Positions 1-6,791 of a stretch of 6,791 nt of DNA are shown here, in pieces (within the stretch, counting starts at the first letter, position 1; every line of letters begins with the position of its first letter). The notes beneath the pieces are model-generated. The model was not told the origin of the DNA, made no database searches, and saw only the letters and a list, made by a program, of their open reading frames with translations. The translations under genes and the position numbers were made by a program. Source of the DNA: Geosiphon pyriformis uo1. Taxonomy: Eukaryota; Fungi; Glomeromycota. The DNA lies in the NCBI GenBank assembly GCA_016748015.1, contig JAAOMT010000330.1, forward strand, positions 1 through 6,791, in the 5' to 3' direction.

Positions 1-320
1 AAATCCAATACTGCAACCAATGAAAGTCCAATACATTGGCAAACTCACAGAACTGAAATTTCAACAATTTTCAGACCAGATTACTTCAATTATTTTAGAT
101 CATTATTTCAATATTACAGATAGTGCTTGGACTTTGACGGAGCTTAGTCTTGAGGAGTAGATTATGTTACCAGTAGAATTTTAGCTATTAATTAGCATAA
201 AAATTACCCTTATAATTCCTATAATTCATTAGTATATTAATATCATTTCAAATTATCATTTATTATTTAATCAATTATCACATATCACGATTCAATTAAA
301 ATAATCTAATTAGTATAACA
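1..320 (+). mobile_element. 3' end of an LTR retrotransposon: internal region, polypurine tract (152-161) and short 3' LTR (165 to about 320)
   Basis: A frame-1 remnant ends at TAG 145-147. GAGGAGTAGA follows, then TGTTAC at 165-170. A candidate LTR end TATAACA (TGTAACA with one G>A) is at 314-320. Confidence 0.5.
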
Positions 321-514
321 GAAAGTAGGATGATCAAATTACACAATACCCTGAACTTTGTAATATTCAAAAATTTACAGAAATTTGCCGAAATTATGAA
401 TAGTTCACTCAAATTAATTAATAGTTTAGCGAAATAACTTGTAGTTCATCAAAATGTATCTTTAGTTCGCCGAAATTTGAGCAAAGAGAAAAAGTGCAAG
501 TTCATAGACTAGTA
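321..514. mobile_element. Possible DNA-transposon end with subterminal repeats
   Basis: Degenerate (T)AGTTCGCCGAAAT motif at 381, 401, 422, 442 and 463, a partial copy at 498 and an inverted partial copy (TGAACT) at 352. The segment ends in GACTAGTA (507-514). Confidence 0.4.
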
Positions 515-516
515 CT

Positions 517-1128
517 ACAACAAGTTGTATAAAAGAAGAGCTTTTCTTTTCTGGAAAATGTATCTTACTTTAGATTTATCTCTTGAAACCATTCCTATAC
601 ACACAAAAAGAAATAAATATCAAATAATTCAAAAAAACCAAATTCTTTAATTATTGTACTTGGAAAATCACCAAAACCCAACTAACATTTCGAAATTGAT
701 TAGCTACCAATTTCAGTAAACTGTTAGTGACTCCAGGTCTGGATAGAAAACGTTTCTCTTGACAAAATTCTATTTCTTTTACATTTCTTTTATTTTTTTT
801 TCTTTTCTTATTACAATTATTAAGGTAGCCTACAGATAAAATTCTGGTAGAAGAGTTGACTTTCACAGCAAAGTAACTATATATTTTAGTGAGCTTCCAG
901 ACGAGCAATTCCTGGAAAAGCATTGATGTTTACTACAATATAACTACATAAAATAACTGGCACAGAATTGGCCATTTCACTTATAAGCCCAGCAGTTCAA
1001 ATTATAGGAGATAATTTGAAGATAAATTCAGTTATTAGAGGTTCAACTACTTCCTGAGAATGTGAATTCACAGCAAATCAATATTATCAACATTTAAGAA
1101 AAGAGACCAAAACCTCCGATAACAGCAT
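517..1128 (-). pseudogene. Possible decayed retroelement ORF (gag N-terminus or accessory type)
   Basis: From ATG 1128: MLLSEVLVSFLKC**Y*FAVNSHSQEVVEPLITEFIFKLSPII*TAGLISEMANSVPV..RLP**L**EKKKK*KKCKRNR. The purine-rich stretch back-mutates to a QQLQQ/E-R-rich coiled coil. It has many stops and no diagnostic motif. Confidence 0.25.
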
Positions 1129-1553
1129 TTATATATTTACACTATTAATAAATATACTTATTGGTTATATCAACTTAATTATTCACTATTAACATTTCAT
1201 GTTAATAATAACTGATATCTGATTACACTAGAACAATAGCTTTTAATTATGGTTATTGACAGAATACTAATTTGTCTTGGCTTAATTACTTTATTTTCTT
1301 TATTTTTTTTATTTTTTCTTTTATCTTGTTTTGTTATTTACTAAAATTGAATAAGGATTAAGTACTGAATGGTTGATGTCAAAAGACTGGTAAAAGACCT
1401 GGGAACAAAGATAAAAACTCATCAAATTGAGAATAACTTACCAGGAGATTACTGGTCACTATGCTGAAAAAAAAATTTGATAGAATTATGATTCTGGGAG
1501 GCTATTGAAAACAACCATTGAATCTTTGTCTATTATACAAAAGACTCAAATCT

Positions 1554-1614
1554 AAAACCTTTAGATTGACAAAACCTTTAGATTGACAAAACTTTCAGAT
1601 TAACAAAACCTTCA
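1554..1614. repeat. 17-bp tandem repeat, about 3.6 copies
   Basis: aaaacctttagattgac (1554), aaaacctttagattgac (1571), aaaactttcagattaac (1588), aaaaccttca (1605). Confidence 0.95.
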
Positions 1615-1707
1615 AAAATTACCAAATATTACCAATCAAATTAGTAATTGAGCACCAAGTTATGGATTTGTTATTTGATTTGTGACCCCAAATAATCATC
1701 TGTAACA

Positions 1708-2766
1708 TTATTTACTATATATGCTCTTAGAAATAAAACTGAATTGGATTTTGTAACTAATAATAAGATGTAACACTACTAAAACCAAATAAAAAAGCTG
1801 TTTATCTAAAATAGATTTTTTCAAGACCACATTAGCAAAAAACTTGACATCTGAGTGTGTTTTTATTAAGCTAAGCTTGAACATATCCTCAAAAGACAAA
1901 AAAATACCAAAATACTTATGAAATTTTCCCTTTTATGCAATTAATATTAACAGATTACTTATTAACAATAAGATATTCTTAACTTTCTAGTTAATAAAAA
2001 TGGCTACCATTTTTTTATTATTAATTGAAATATTATTAAGCCTAAAAAAATCACTTGTAATATCCAAAATATACTAAGTAACAGTCTAACTATTCTTTAC
2101 TCAAATTGTGTTATTAACAAAAGTTTTAGCAGCCAAATATAAAGTCAACTTATTCTGGACTTCTATTCTATCAGTTTTGGCAACAAACTTAGTATCAATG
2201 TGGTAATCACACAGGCTTTTGTGTCTCTTAACTTCACACAAAAGAGGATCATAAAAGATTCTTCAGAGCAAAAGTGAAAAAATCTCATCTGATTCAGGCT
2301 ATCATATATATAATACTCATTAGTAAGCCCAAAATCTATTATAATCCAGTTTATCTTATCATTGTAAATGCTACCAAAACCTAACAAAGCATTTACATAT
2401 TTTAATTTAAACCAAACTGTTCTTAAGATGATATCAGCCAACTAAATTATATGCTTTTTGCATATTCTACAAAATTAACCAAAGTTCATAATCTTTTTTC
2501 AAAGCATCTTTAACAACCAAATCTACTACAAAAATAAAAGACTAAGTAATAGTGTCTTTTAATACAGAAAAATTATTATCATGCAGCACATCAAATTTGC
2601 TACATGCCAACAAAATTTTATCAAAGAACAACTTAGAAAGGATCTTTTGAACAGTCTTAATTAAGGCAATTGGTCTAATATTAGTCAAAATTTTCTTCTA
2701 CTTATAAGACTTAGGAATTATTAAAACCCAAGCTTTTTTTCAAAGACTAAGCACTAATTTATGTAC
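1708..2766 (-). pseudogene. Non-LTR reverse transcriptase domain (LINE ORF2), pseudogenised
   Basis: Translation reads VHKLVLSL*KKAWVLIIPK..NIRPIALIKTVQKILSK..L*NMQKAYNLVG*..SLNQ/EIFSLLL*RIFYDPLL..AAKTFVNNTI*..HKYFGIFL. Motifs: IPK 2710-2718, RPIAL 2662-2676, DxxKAYD as NMQKAYN 2446-2466, GxxQG..SP as SLNQ/EIFSL, FVDD as FVNN 2110-2121, YLG as KYFG 1906-1917. Frameshifts at about 2377 and 2288. Track ORFs 1708..1899 and 2163..2441 are pieces of it. Confidence 0.95.
2763..2766. repeat. Target-site duplication GTAC, left copy
   Basis: Identical 4-mer abutting the LTR start; partner at 3633-3636. Confidence 0.9.
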
Positions 2767-2863
2767 TGTTACAGTTTAAGAATTTAGCAAAAAGAATTAT
2801 AAAAATAATACAAACTATTCAATTATAATATAGCACAGTAATAATCTTAGAAAGGTAATGATT

Positions 2864-2955
2864 AACATAATAGCAAACACCATCTCACAATAGTGGCAAG
2901 CACCAGTTCACAATAGCAGTCAATACTAACTGGTGATAGCAGCAAACACCAGGTT
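2864..2955 (+). repeat. Four degenerate 22-24 bp tandem repeats in the U3-like part of the solo LTR
   Basis: Units: aacataatagcaaacaccatct / cacaatagtggcaagcaccagtt / cacaatagcagtcaatactaact / ggtgatagcagcaaacaccaggtt. Confidence 0.8.
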
Positions 2956-2997
2956 GAAATATCAAAAAGAAAGTATTTTCTCGTAGAACTACAAACA

Positions 2998-3009
2998 TGT
3001 ATATATACA
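2998..3009 (+). promoter_or_regulatory. Candidate LTR TATA box (palindrome TGTATATATACA)
   Basis: TATATATA inside a perfect 12-bp palindrome about 45 bp downstream of the U3-like repeats. Confidence 0.4.
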
Positions 3010-3632
3010 GTAGTTTTAATATTGGGAAAAAAACAATCAAGTAATAAAAATCATAATTTATCAAGCAATAGATCCAATTTTATCCAACAAACTCCACTTT
3101 AAATCATACTTTCAAATTAAATATTCCAAGAAACCTTTAAATCAAAAAAAAATGAAAAAGAATATTTAAAACTGAATTATCACAATCCAAAGTATTAAGA
3201 AACTTACTTGTATTATTTATTGAATAAAACTATTATTCATTAACTGAATCTCTTGGAAGAATAATCCTTGATCAAGATTATTCATATTGTTACTAATTGA
3301 TAAAAGCTTTATTGTAAGAATTAGAAAAAGCACTAAAGACCATTAACATTCTGTGTTTCTAGATTAGAGAAACACATTAGGCAATTGCAAGAATAGCCTC
3401 AGAGAAGACCCCAAACAGTGGGTAGATTTCAGTTCAGCCTCTGAGAAGGAGTACATAAACACACACAACAATCAGGAATTGAAAAATAACTTATATCGCA
3501 ACATTAAAAAAAAAGCCTTCAGTATAACAGTAACATTATCACACAAATAGAATTGAAGAACTCATGAAAGACTGATTGCAATTAAAACAGGACATCAGCA
3601 ATTAAATATAACAAGAAAATCATTCCGTAACA

Positions 3633-3636
3633 GTAC
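3633..3636. repeat. Target-site duplication GTAC, right copy
   Basis: Identical 4-mer abutting the LTR end; partner at 2763-2766. Confidence 0.9.
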
Positions 3637-5269
3637 CAAACAAAAATTCAAGAGATCTAAAAGCATTACAAGAACAGAACTATTACAATGTTTCTAAAGT
3701 TTATTGATAATATCAGACAAATAAGCAGTTTTTTTATCAAGCAAATCCTTAATTACTTGTAGCAGATTATCAAAAGTAATAGTATTTATAACCTTAAAAA
3801 AGGCAGCATTATTAACATAAGCCAGCAGTAAATATTGATGACTTTATTGGTTAGAAACCCCACTTATAATCAATTTTTTTTTGTTTAATTCTTTATTATT
3901 TTATTCACTTTAGATTTAACATTATTAGGATCCAGAATTAACTTATTATTTACTATTAGATAATTCAAAACCACTTTCTAAAAAAGATGCTTCAACACAT
4001 TTCTAATTGTGTAACTCTTGTTGACTGTGAAACTTTCCATCTGTTTATTAATAACTGACCTAATTTTTAACTCTTTAGCTTACAAAAATTCAGCAAACTT
4101 AAAGACACAATATAATTTCTTTACACTAAAAAAAGCTGAATGTATACTATCAAAATCCATACCAGAATTCAAAAAAGCCTGAACAGATGAAGTCTTATTA
4201 ATGTCCAAAAAAGTTCAGTAGGTTATCAAAAACTTAAATACACTATTAACATTCTTATACAAAGGTTTAACAATTCTTGAAACCAAAATTTCTAACTTAT
4301 AAAACCTAGAAGATATCTTGATAAAAATACTGTCAAAGTTCTTACACTATTTTTTCTTGAAAATTTCATTTGCTAAAAAACATATTACTTTACAAACTGT
4401 ATTCCATATAATATTCAAATTTGAAAATCTCTTAAACACAACAAACTTACCAGAAAACATTGCTGTATTAGCTGCTATAGACTTCTTAAACTTGCATTAC
4501 TTTGCTTTATCAGCACTTTTAATGTCAAACTTTCAACAATTCTTATTCACTTGTTTGCAAAAAAAGTTTAATTGTGTATTTAATAATTCACTTAAACTTA
4601 CAAACACAAAAACAACTTAGTAATTAGTGTCAAAATGTTTATTAACATTTAAAACATCATAATATACTACTGTATTAACCAAATTTGAAAAAACAACCAC
4701 ATAATTAATCATCTTTTTAGCACTTTTTGAATTTTTTTATGTAGAACTTTTTACAATCAAATTTCTTGACAAAAAATTGACCAACTTCAAATCAAGGCAT
4801 TTCTTAAAACTAACACATTTTTGCAAATTATCTTGATTGAAATTTCCACTCAAGATGACAAAAAAAGATTCATTCACAGTCTTTGCAATCAAAAAATTGA
4901 TCTTACCAACTTAAAACAAATATACAGCCAAAGTGGCATTAGTATATAGCCTCAAAATTGAACCAGATAACTTATTCTTAAAAAGCAGCTTAATAGACAA
5001 AAATCTATTAAAAACTTCCAAAATTTTGTATACATGTCTTGCCAAATCAATGTTTATAATAATTGCAACACCAGAACCCAGATAATCAGAATCCAATTTA
5101 GAAGTAAACACATATACACTAGCAAACTTGTCAGCAATTCATAGGTGGACTTTTTCCTTCAGCTTTGTTTTAGTAACTATTGAAATCAAATTGTTCATAT
5201 CTTTATGCCAACAAATAATATCCATTTGCTTAACAGAAACATTAATACTTCATATATTGGATTTGTCAT
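3633..5269 (-). pseudogene. AP (APE/EEP) endonuclease domain plus EN-RT linker of LINE ORF2, pseudogenised
   Basis: One frame runs from 5258 to about 3882. Motifs: NI*S (=NVRG) 5247-5258, TKTK (=xETK) 5163-5174, GVAI 5061-5072, ILSGNFN (=ILGGDFN) 4836-4856, T* (=TW) 4737-4742, INY (=IDY) 4701-4709, DTNY (=xS/TDH) 4620-4631. After a frameshift in the T9 run at 3874-3882 it continues QYLLLAY..DLLDKKTAYLSDIINKL*KH..LLNFCLV, the pre-RT KAxGxxGIxNE region. Track ORF 4911..5111 is a piece of it. Confidence 0.93.
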
Positions 5270-5585
5270 TAAAAAAAAAAGTATTTACACTTAAACTAAA
5301 ATTGTCTAATTTGGCCATTAAGTTTATAACTGTGTTTGATAAACTGTTCAAAGTTACTTCAAGTTTCAAAACAGCCAAAGAATCAAAACTCATCACTCTC
5401 ACAATAGTCTCATCACTAGTGGTTATACTCAAATTCTTACTTATTACAACAGGCTTCTTTGGTTTTTTATAAGATGCACTATATAAGCAAACACTCTTTA
5501 CTTATTTCTTTTTTACACTTGAACAGATCCTTAAACCAGCCAAGCTTGAACCAAAATTATCAACAAAAGTACTTACTGAATTCAT
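5266..5585 (-). pseudogene. LINE ORF1 remnant (about 105 codons, probably internally deleted)
   Basis: From ATG 5585: MNSVSTFVDNFGSSLAGLRICSSVKKK*VKSVCLYSASYKKPKKPVVISKNLSITTSDETIVRVMSFDSLAVLKLEVTLNSLSNTVINLMAKLDN. It has a basic N-terminus and a heptad-like C-terminus, lies directly upstream of the EN, and has one internal stop. Confidence 0.6.
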
Positions 5586-5720
5586 TATAACAAAAAAAGA
5601 TAAGCTAAAAGAAATAATTAAAAGAAATACAAAAGAGAAAAGAAAAAAAAATAACTAAAACTTCAAAAAAAAATTTTTTTGCTCTTATTATAGACAAAAG
5701 ATTGACAAAAAAAAGAGTTT

Positions 5721-6380
5721 TTCATATTAAATTTAATATAAAAATTTATTTTTAAATGTTTTTTGTTTATTGTTTTGGTATATTCTTTAAAATATTGTTA
5801 TAATTAAATAATATTATATTTTAATATAAGCAAAATTATAATTTATAAGTTTTTATTATGCTTAATAATTATAAAAATTTTAATTTGAATAAAATAATAT
5901 TAAATCAAATATTTAATTTTTTTACAAATTTGAAAATATAATAATAGTAAAACACCAAAATAATTACATAAGAAGAAAATACATAAATTTAAAACTATTA
6001 ATAAGTATAACTTATTTTTTTGGTTACTTTAACAAGTAAATTTTGTTTATAAACTTAAGTCTTTATTGATGTTTTTGTATTGTATAGTTGACTATTACAG
6101 GTTATGTTATTTAGTATAAACACTTTAAAAACATCAAATACTTTAAAATATAAAGGCTTTATAAATAAAAATATAATAATAATAAAAAATACATTATTAA
6201 ATAATCTATAATAAAATCTATAAACTAATGCATTTTTTTAAAAAATGGTTTAGAAATTTATTTTGTAGTTAAATTTTTTCTGTAAACATTTTAAATAGAA
6301 ACCAATAGTAAATAGAGTGAATTTTCAGCATTTAGACCAGTATTTACTAAAAGATTTTTAATACAAAATGCACTTTCAAT
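5721..6380. other. Extremely AT-rich, CpG-free low-complexity tract, probably terminally eroded repeat
   Basis: Long A/T runs, no CpG seen and no recognisable frame. Confidence 0.55.
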
Positions 6381-6384
6381 GGAA

Positions 6385-6580
6385 ACAACGGGTTTTTAAT
6401 TAAAAAAACACTCTAAACCAACAAACGTTTTTTTTTGCTTTTTTTTGGGAAAAAAACGCGTTCTGAAATGCCAAAGAATATTGTGGGAAGAACAGAGTTA
6501 TAAGGCAAATGGCACTCTTATATAAAAAAGGGAAAGCCTGGGAGCCTCTTAAATAACTTTAAGAGTCACTCTTAAAATAA
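6385..6580 (+). promoter_or_regulatory. Promoter-like region with retained CpGs
   Basis: Poly(dA:dT) tracts at 6428-6456, AACGCGTT (MCB-type ACGCGT) at 6455-6462, TATATAAA at 6519-6526, and an inverted repeat at 6558-6576. Confidence 0.35.
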
Positions 6581-6659
6581 AGTAATTTAAAATTGTTTCC
6601 TAATTGATGATTTATTATATAGTATCATGTGGTTTATTATTTTATTAATAAAATAACAA

Positions 6660-6674
6660 CCCCCCCCCCCCCCC
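6660..6674. repeat. C15 homopolymer (G15 on the minus strand)
   Basis: Direct count of 15 consecutive C. Confidence 0.95.
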
Positions 6675-6791
6675 AATATACTATGTCGAGAATTTCAGCA
6701 GTGGTGCAATATTTGATGTCTTTAGAGTGCTTGTTTAATTTTAAACAATTAGCAATATTTATTGTGTTCTTATAATAAAAACTTCGACAAT

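Follow-up and report, generated by a model that had tools for sequence, protein, structure and literature searches.

C:G to T:A decay on both strands of a dead LINE and its neighbouring repeats in the fungus Geosiphon pyriformis

What kind of process fills a retrotransposon with stop codons by changing almost nothing except C:G base pairs? The question is raised by positions 1708-5585, read on the minus strand, of a 6,791-bp stretch of Geosiphon pyriformis DNA. This stretch, referred to here as the window, is the entire contig C199 of a 128.3-Mb assembly. The segment is a dead, 3'-truncated non-LTR retrotransposon (long interspersed nuclear element, LINE) with an apurinic/apyrimidinic endonuclease (APE) and a reverse transcriptase (RT), which was later split by a solo Ty3/gypsy long terminal repeat (LTR). 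An initial annotation, made from the letters of the window, had proposed that a repeat-targeted mutagenic defence resembling repeat-induced point mutation (RIP) had struck the element, at CpG first and then at every CpN. The mutational signature is real and strong. As its cause we favour, at about even probability, a gradual, two-speed deamination of cytosines in inactive repeat copies, tied to their probably methylated or heterochromatic state. The outcome is RIP-like, yet in our reading no Neurospora-type burst took place. The parts of the element used below are as follows.

3633..5585, minus strand: 5' part of the LINE, comprising a leader (5585 to ~5260), the APE endonuclease (~5260 to 4600), a linker and the start of the RT, placed by translation and by collinear alignment with 26 other copies.
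2767..3632, plus strand: solo Ty3/gypsy LTR nested in the LINE, with its sense opposite to that of the LINE and ends TGTTAC...GTAACA.
2763..2766 and 3633-3636 (the latter within the LINE 5' part), no strand assigned: the two copies of the target-site duplication, GTAC.
1708..2762, minus strand: 3' part of the LINE, with RT motifs RPIAL to FVNN (~2700 to 2100) followed by ~130 codons; no poly(A).

Substitution spectrum and sequence context

Sister copies of the LINE were compared with the window, and the excess of transitions over transversions that the initial annotation had pointed to is far beyond chance. The copy on contig C616 (94% identity) differs from the window by 152 transitions and 12 transversions, and three copies at 80% identity differ by 517:40, 529:40 and 481:28. 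For more distant subfamilies the ratio is 2.4-3.8; at that distance transitions have reached saturation, and the transversions stem from older divergence. The 5' and 3' LTRs of five elements are separated by 153 transitions and 5 transversions. Corresponding counts are 21:1 for repB, an unrelated repeat next to the LINE, between the window and C616; 20:1 among three near-identical contigs, one of which is the window; and 36:1 for variants at 95% or more among contigs of the source sequencing run.

Both strands have been affected, as had been claimed from the motifs. Since integration about half of the C:G pairs in the window LINE have become T:A, with a loss of ~44% of C and ~40% of G. All of the altered motifs quoted in that claim can be read in the window translation (NI*S, KTK, SGNFN, ST*, INY, TNY, NMQKAYN, FVNN and SLLL), and a 21-member protein alignment holds unmutated states at the same sites (TETKLK, GGDFN, TW, IDY and FDTD).

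For 473 of the 508 stops (93%) over the 27 aligned copies, another copy has a sense codon that C>T or G>A changes alone would turn into the stop. By origin these are TGG>TGA (120), TGG>TAG (99), TGG>TAA (89), CAA>TAA (71), CAG>TAG (69), CAG>TAA (22) and CGA>TGA (3). The three TGG classes make up 308 of the 508 stops and place many hits outside CpG, in agreement with the initial annotation. Strict outgroup parsimony was tried and failed since the same sites mutate repeatedly: the same Trp codons have become stops in at least half of the copies, and at 112 of the 164 sites that differ between the window and C616 the outgroups carry both states. Changes were polarised instead by per-column state counts and by LTR pairs.

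LTR pairs, whose two members start out identical when an element integrates, serve as a post-insertion control. Differences within each pair were polarised by the remaining copies of the family. The five pairs yielded 72 C>T, 68 G>A, 10 T>C, 3 A>G and 5 transversions. Only 14 of the 140 C>T or G>A changes lie at CpG, and 76 of the 140 lie at TpC; changes are thus not confined to ancestral CpG, and passive decay of 5-methylcytosine at CpG alone is ruled out by this count together with the widespread TGG-derived stops. Among 23 LTR copies, 258 C>T and 253 G>A changes (511 in all) were counted against 33 transversions. Apparent T>C changes fall mostly at CpG sites that are already mutated in the majority of copies. 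By arithmetic on the counts for the LTR family, C>T per C:G site is ~40 times as frequent as T>C per A:T site, and the equilibrium implied by the spectrum is ~3% GC. In the same family, non-CpG C>T exceeds C>A plus C>G ~40-fold.

CpG is exhausted in the LINE. None is present in 3009 bp, as compared with ~47 expected from composition; its TpG and CpA stand at an observed/expected value of 1.2. In all LINE copies this value is below 0.1 for CpG and 1.1-1.4 for TpG and CpA. The order of contexts is alike in the LTR and LINE families, namely CpG, then TpC/CpC, then ApC/GpC. Values for the LTR family are 0.24-0.33 at NCG (TCG 0.26, ACG 0.33, GCG 0.26, CCG 0.24), 0.10-0.17 at TCN, 0.07-0.10 at CCN and 0.02-0.12 at ACN/GCN. 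Those for the LINE family are 0.53-0.73 at CpG, 0.38-0.54 at non-CpG YpC and 0.24-0.37 at non-CpG RpC. A 3' base other than G has little effect, CpA being no more mutable than CpT, and it is the 5' base that decides. The RIP index, (CpA+TpG)/(ApC+GpT), is 1.1-1.4. These values bear out a C:G>T:A process on both strands that is fastest at CpG and also acts at every other CpN. They also uphold the suggestion that it belongs neither to the CpA type of Neurospora, given the index, nor to the TpCpG type of Pucciniomycotina, given that TCG is not above ACG.

Accumulation of hits and its possible causes

C>T and G>A hits alternate randomly along the copies (runs test, combined Z +1.2) and are unclustered, with 69 neighbouring pairs within 5 bp as compared with 71 +/- 6. 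Nor is there a surplus of tandem CC>TT changes (13 observed, 10.4 expected). Both sides of one CpG were hit only 2 times against 10.9 expected, a deficit that is anticipated if the second C loses its methylated context. The load per LTR copy is 9-31 and near Poisson, and the linked LTRs of one element, each ~870 bp, differ by only ~3.5%. Among LINE copies the mutated fraction is 0.43-0.65. At codon positions 1, 2 and 3 it is 0.41, 0.41 and 0.44, and this equality indicates that the changes occurred after inactivation. For the source element, GC content at third codon positions (GC3), as deduced from per-column state counts, was 0.38-0.47, or 0.30 by the strictest rule. Since this is far above the ~3% equilibrium, it argues that the active lineage was unexposed to the process. 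Many family copies with open frames of more than 1000 amino acids coexist with the decayed ones. Private transversions were compared with C>T load; the comparison is uninterpretable, as close duplicates hide private changes. Note that every sequence compared is repetitive: all long open reading frames in the flanks are transposon genes, and positions 5586-6791, like the window as a whole, consist of repeats.

The process has two components. A fast one acts at CpG and ends once one strand of a CpG has been hit, as anticipated for deamination of 5-methylcytosine maintained by DNMT1. A slower one acts on all other cytosines, preferably those with a 5' pyrimidine (TpC and CpC over ApC and GpC); even these changes have a per-site frequency ~30-40 times that of any other class of substitution. 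Because hits appear to accrue singly and independently, at a similar pace in copies of one age, and the active lineage that produced the copies seems to be spared, we read the pattern as gradual deamination of inactive repeats. An intact DNMT1 gene, encoding an RFD, two BAH domains and a methyltransferase domain, is located on C371.

Two further DNMT1-like loci (C702:1325162-1327926 and C666:678738-681548) have RFD and methyltransferase domains, with a weak BAH match on C702, and contain several in-frame stops. Both are possibly duplicated host genes that this decay has also struck.

Several points weigh against gradual deamination of silenced copies. Restriction to repeats rests solely on the GC3 argument, as the DNA compared was all repetitive. 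That argument in turn uses inferred ancestral states and would fail if either the process or the family were recent. A signal of CHG-type methylation was looked for in the context values and not found (CHG 0.052, CHH 0.079). Targeting of a C that follows a pyrimidine typifies cytidine deaminases and not methyltransferase contexts, and we know of no non-CG methylation in Glomeromycotina. For transposons of Rhizophagus irregularis, only CG methylation has been reported.

A dedicated genome defence, either a homology-triggered RIP-like process or a repeat-directed DNA cytosine deaminase that accepts all contexts and prefers TpC/CpC and CpG, is a rival explanation that we judge unlikely. It would account for an extreme C:G>T:A excess on both strands of LINE, LTR, repB and near-identical contigs alike, and the TpC/CpC preference resembles the way a deaminase chooses its targets. 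The sites at which the three near-identical contigs differ lie in clusters. Candidate enzymes include the products of several methyltransferase genes on C657, C646 and C692, which match PF00145 with no RFD or BAH match and might include a RID/Masc1 homologue. The uniform mutated fraction of the LINE copies could come from a homology threshold, or from the manner in which copies were retrieved. The distribution of hits speaks the other way, with no clustering and no strand-coherent runs, a near-Poisson load per copy, 870-bp LTRs of one element that have diverged so little, and many family copies that retain their long open frames. The RIP index does not fit such a process either. No match to OTT_1508, NAD1 or a DddA-like deaminase was obtained in the genome, although these are weak negatives, the controls being without a match too. 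We can put forward only tentatively that G. pyriformis, a fungus outside Dikarya, possesses an undescribed RID-independent, repeat- or heterochromatin-directed cytosine-deaminating defence, with the signature CpG and then TpC/CpC, by which silenced transposons and duplicated genes slowly become AT-rich deserts.

Still less probable is a C>T bias of the whole genome that dead transposons record because they are free of selection, with sunlight on this surface-living fungus as one possible source. Accumulation that is clock-like, unclustered and strand-symmetric would be expected of it, the signature is present in all segments of the window at strengths that age alone could explain, and the sampled loci are AT-rich (21-37% GC). 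A preference for 5' pyrimidines would also suit damage of the ultraviolet type, but tandem CC>TT changes are not in excess, and ultraviolet damage was rejected on this ground. A general bias is hard to reconcile with an equilibrium of ~3% GC when the source LINE had a GC3 of ~0.4 and the genes of young LTR elements have 31-40% GC. The ~40-fold excess of non-CpG C>T over C>A plus C>G likewise argues against it, and is far above the spontaneous spectra known to us. Finally, a uracil-DNA glycosylase gene is present, with a four-exon match to the ung model on C609 (the general uracil-DNA glycosylase model gave only one weak match); loss of this enzyme was rejected as a cause.

APOBEC3-like editing of RNA or cDNA during retrotransposition, before integration, shares the TpC/CpC preference but is highly improbable, being contradicted by LTRs that were identical at integration and now stand 153 transitions and 5 transversions apart, by the equality of C>T and G>A (72:68 and 258:253), and by DNA-level duplicates (window and C616, including flanks that are not LINE) with the same spectrum.

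Structure of the element and its surroundings

The reading frame of the LINE family is clear-cut, with 508 stops over all 27 copies as compared with 1805 and 3076 in the other two phases; the window copy contributes 27 stops in 891 codons. The frame that the initial annotation had followed from 5585 on the minus strand does contain exactly 13 stops up to codon 567, at about window position 3885. Its other structural statements required revision. The LINE is not uninterrupted from 1708 to 5585, the solo LTR at 2767-3632 having been missed, and the frame is shifted in the coding part at ~3875 (-1), ~2380 (-2) and ~2289 (-1). At the 5' edge of the coding region, alignment with the 26 other copies gave a 1-base gap at ~5279 and a 22-base gap at ~5260. 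Indels are nevertheless sparse, amounting to six gaps in 3 kb. At the 3' end the copy is cut at 1708 against repB and has no complete tail, and the same junction is found in the C616 paralogue.

Searched against the organism's own genome, query positions 1954-2822 proved to be a distinct repeat, represented by dozens of copies with 92-95% identity; many occur as pairs 7-10 kb apart. Domains of RT/RNase H, gag, integrase and a Tf2-type SH3 are found beside these copies, and because gag-pol domains adjoin them the insert is identified as a solo Ty3/gypsy LTR. It has TG..CA termini and a 4-bp duplication, and the same sequence flanks gag-pol elsewhere, while in other LINE copies that do not carry the LTR both flanks are joined directly. 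Contigs of the source sequencing run include the joined, LTR-less form, with ATAT at that site; the depth of the LTR is ~1000-fold higher. The target site reads GTAC on both flanks of the LTR and ATAT in the LTR-less C616 paralogue (locus L004, ~3335-3338), which amounts to two transitions in four bases since the duplication. In the open reading frames flanking Ty3/gypsy copies (loci L009-L030) there was one weak match to dUTPase (E 8e-4).

No Pfam match was obtained with ten stop-free pieces from the window or with ten longer ones from other copies. For this reason the identity of the LINE is taken from less decayed members of the family. The RT piece matches only proteins of Geosiphon pyriformis. 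One of them, P0001 (56% identical), carries PF00078, and the genome from which the window comes encodes it at 100% identity. The RT of R2 was matched weakly (E 0.045), and RT motifs are legible in the window translation. The endonuclease piece matches 34 Geosiphon proteins; of 21 aligned family members, 3 contain PF14529 (best E 3.5e-6) and 2 contain PF03372. When the endonuclease alignment was used as a profile against solved structures, there was no match. Both pieces match Geosiphon pyriformis proteins exclusively, and the earlier guess, from peptides, that the host belongs to Glomeromycotina was correct. The proteins P0001-P0038 (G9A89_* of Geosiphon pyriformis) are dozens of partly decayed LINE fragments that the public annotation lists as hypothetical, most of which have no Pfam domain.

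The remainder of the window, whose GC content varies from 13 to 30% along its length, is made up of other repeats.

165..1123, no strand assigned: repA, a repeat in which 17 of the 21 substitutions among the three near-identical contigs are located.
1124..1707, no strand assigned: repB, a repeat unrelated to the LINE and abutting its truncated end; duplicated together with the LINE onto contig C616.
5586..6791, no strand assigned: further repeats upstream of the LINE, of which 5586-6250 has 13% GC.

The two contigs almost identical to the window are C303 and C274. Among the three there are 20 transitions, 1 transversion and 1 indel, confined to two short clusters (329-916 and 4762-4821), and the remaining ~5.6 kb is identical; gene conversion, mosaic assembly or local mutation could be responsible. 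Both repA and repB (165-1707) recur beside LINE copies in either orientation (loci L007, L037, L041, L042, L050 and L058), and may represent a separate element that inserts near the LINE or travels with it. The stretch at 5586-6250, of which repeat copies at 82-92% identity exist elsewhere, has no CpG, is strongly depleted in TpC and has a (TC+GA)/(AC+GT) value of 0.55; the stretch appears to be at a more advanced stage of the decay seen in the LINE. Also present are a 17-bp tandem repeat at 1554-1612 (3.5 copies, 90% match) and a run of ~14 C at 6660-6675 amid AT-rich DNA.

Comparison with known systems

In the prevailing view RIP occurs only in some ascomycetes, and a few basidiomycetes have CpG-centred look-alikes. 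An all-context, both-strand C>T process with a 5'-pyrimidine preference in a glomeromycete would, if true, be either a new form of mutagenic repeat control or an unusual mutational regime. It would bear on how transposons are restrained in large, repeat-rich and supposedly asexual genomes, and on the AT-rich deserts of such genomes. Repeat dating would be affected, as transition-based divergence clocks would err badly, and so would annotation, many decayed LINE pieces having been filed as hypothetical proteins. Among the papers searched, none links Geosiphon to RIP, and no account of the signature in this fungal group was found. For Gigaspora and Mucoromycotina, earlier studies describe no RIP signature; all documented cases of RID come from Pezizomycotina, and a kingdom-wide survey of 2025, in which Geosiphon is not mentioned, limits Neurospora-like RIP to a few ascomycetes.

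With RIP of Neurospora crassa and other Pezizomycotina, which comprises a RID-dependent and a DIM-2/heterochromatin route, the Geosiphon signature shares both-strand C:G>T:A changes in repeats, the creation of stops, few indels and transversions, and an AT-rich end product. It differs in context, which here is CpG over TpC/CpC and set by the 5' base instead of CpA, and in the index, which is 1.1-1.4 here as compared with below 1.03 in RIP. Clustered or strand-coherent tracts are absent, the load rises gradually, and the host is a glomeromycete.

The RIP-like hypermutation of Pucciniomycotina, as in Microbotryum, resembles it in that C>T changes involving CpG affect transposons outside Ascomycota. 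The target site in that group is TpCpG. In Geosiphon the NCG contexts are similar to one another (TCG 0.26, ACG 0.33), and of the C>T changes that followed insertion 90% are at non-CpG sites.

Editing of retroelements by APOBEC3 and deamination of double-strand DNA by DddA-type enzymes (which prefer TpC) likewise favour C after T or C. The changes described here were made after integration, are equal on the two strands and are unclustered, and our searches found no gene for such a deaminase (weak negatives, as above).

Decay of CG-methylated transposons, of the kind represented by Rhizophagus irregularis, has in common with the Geosiphon repeats a total loss of CpG, an excess of TpG and CpA, a deficit of double hits and the presence of DNMT1. 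It explains only the fast part at CpG, however, and most of the changes in these repeats are at non-CpG cytosines.

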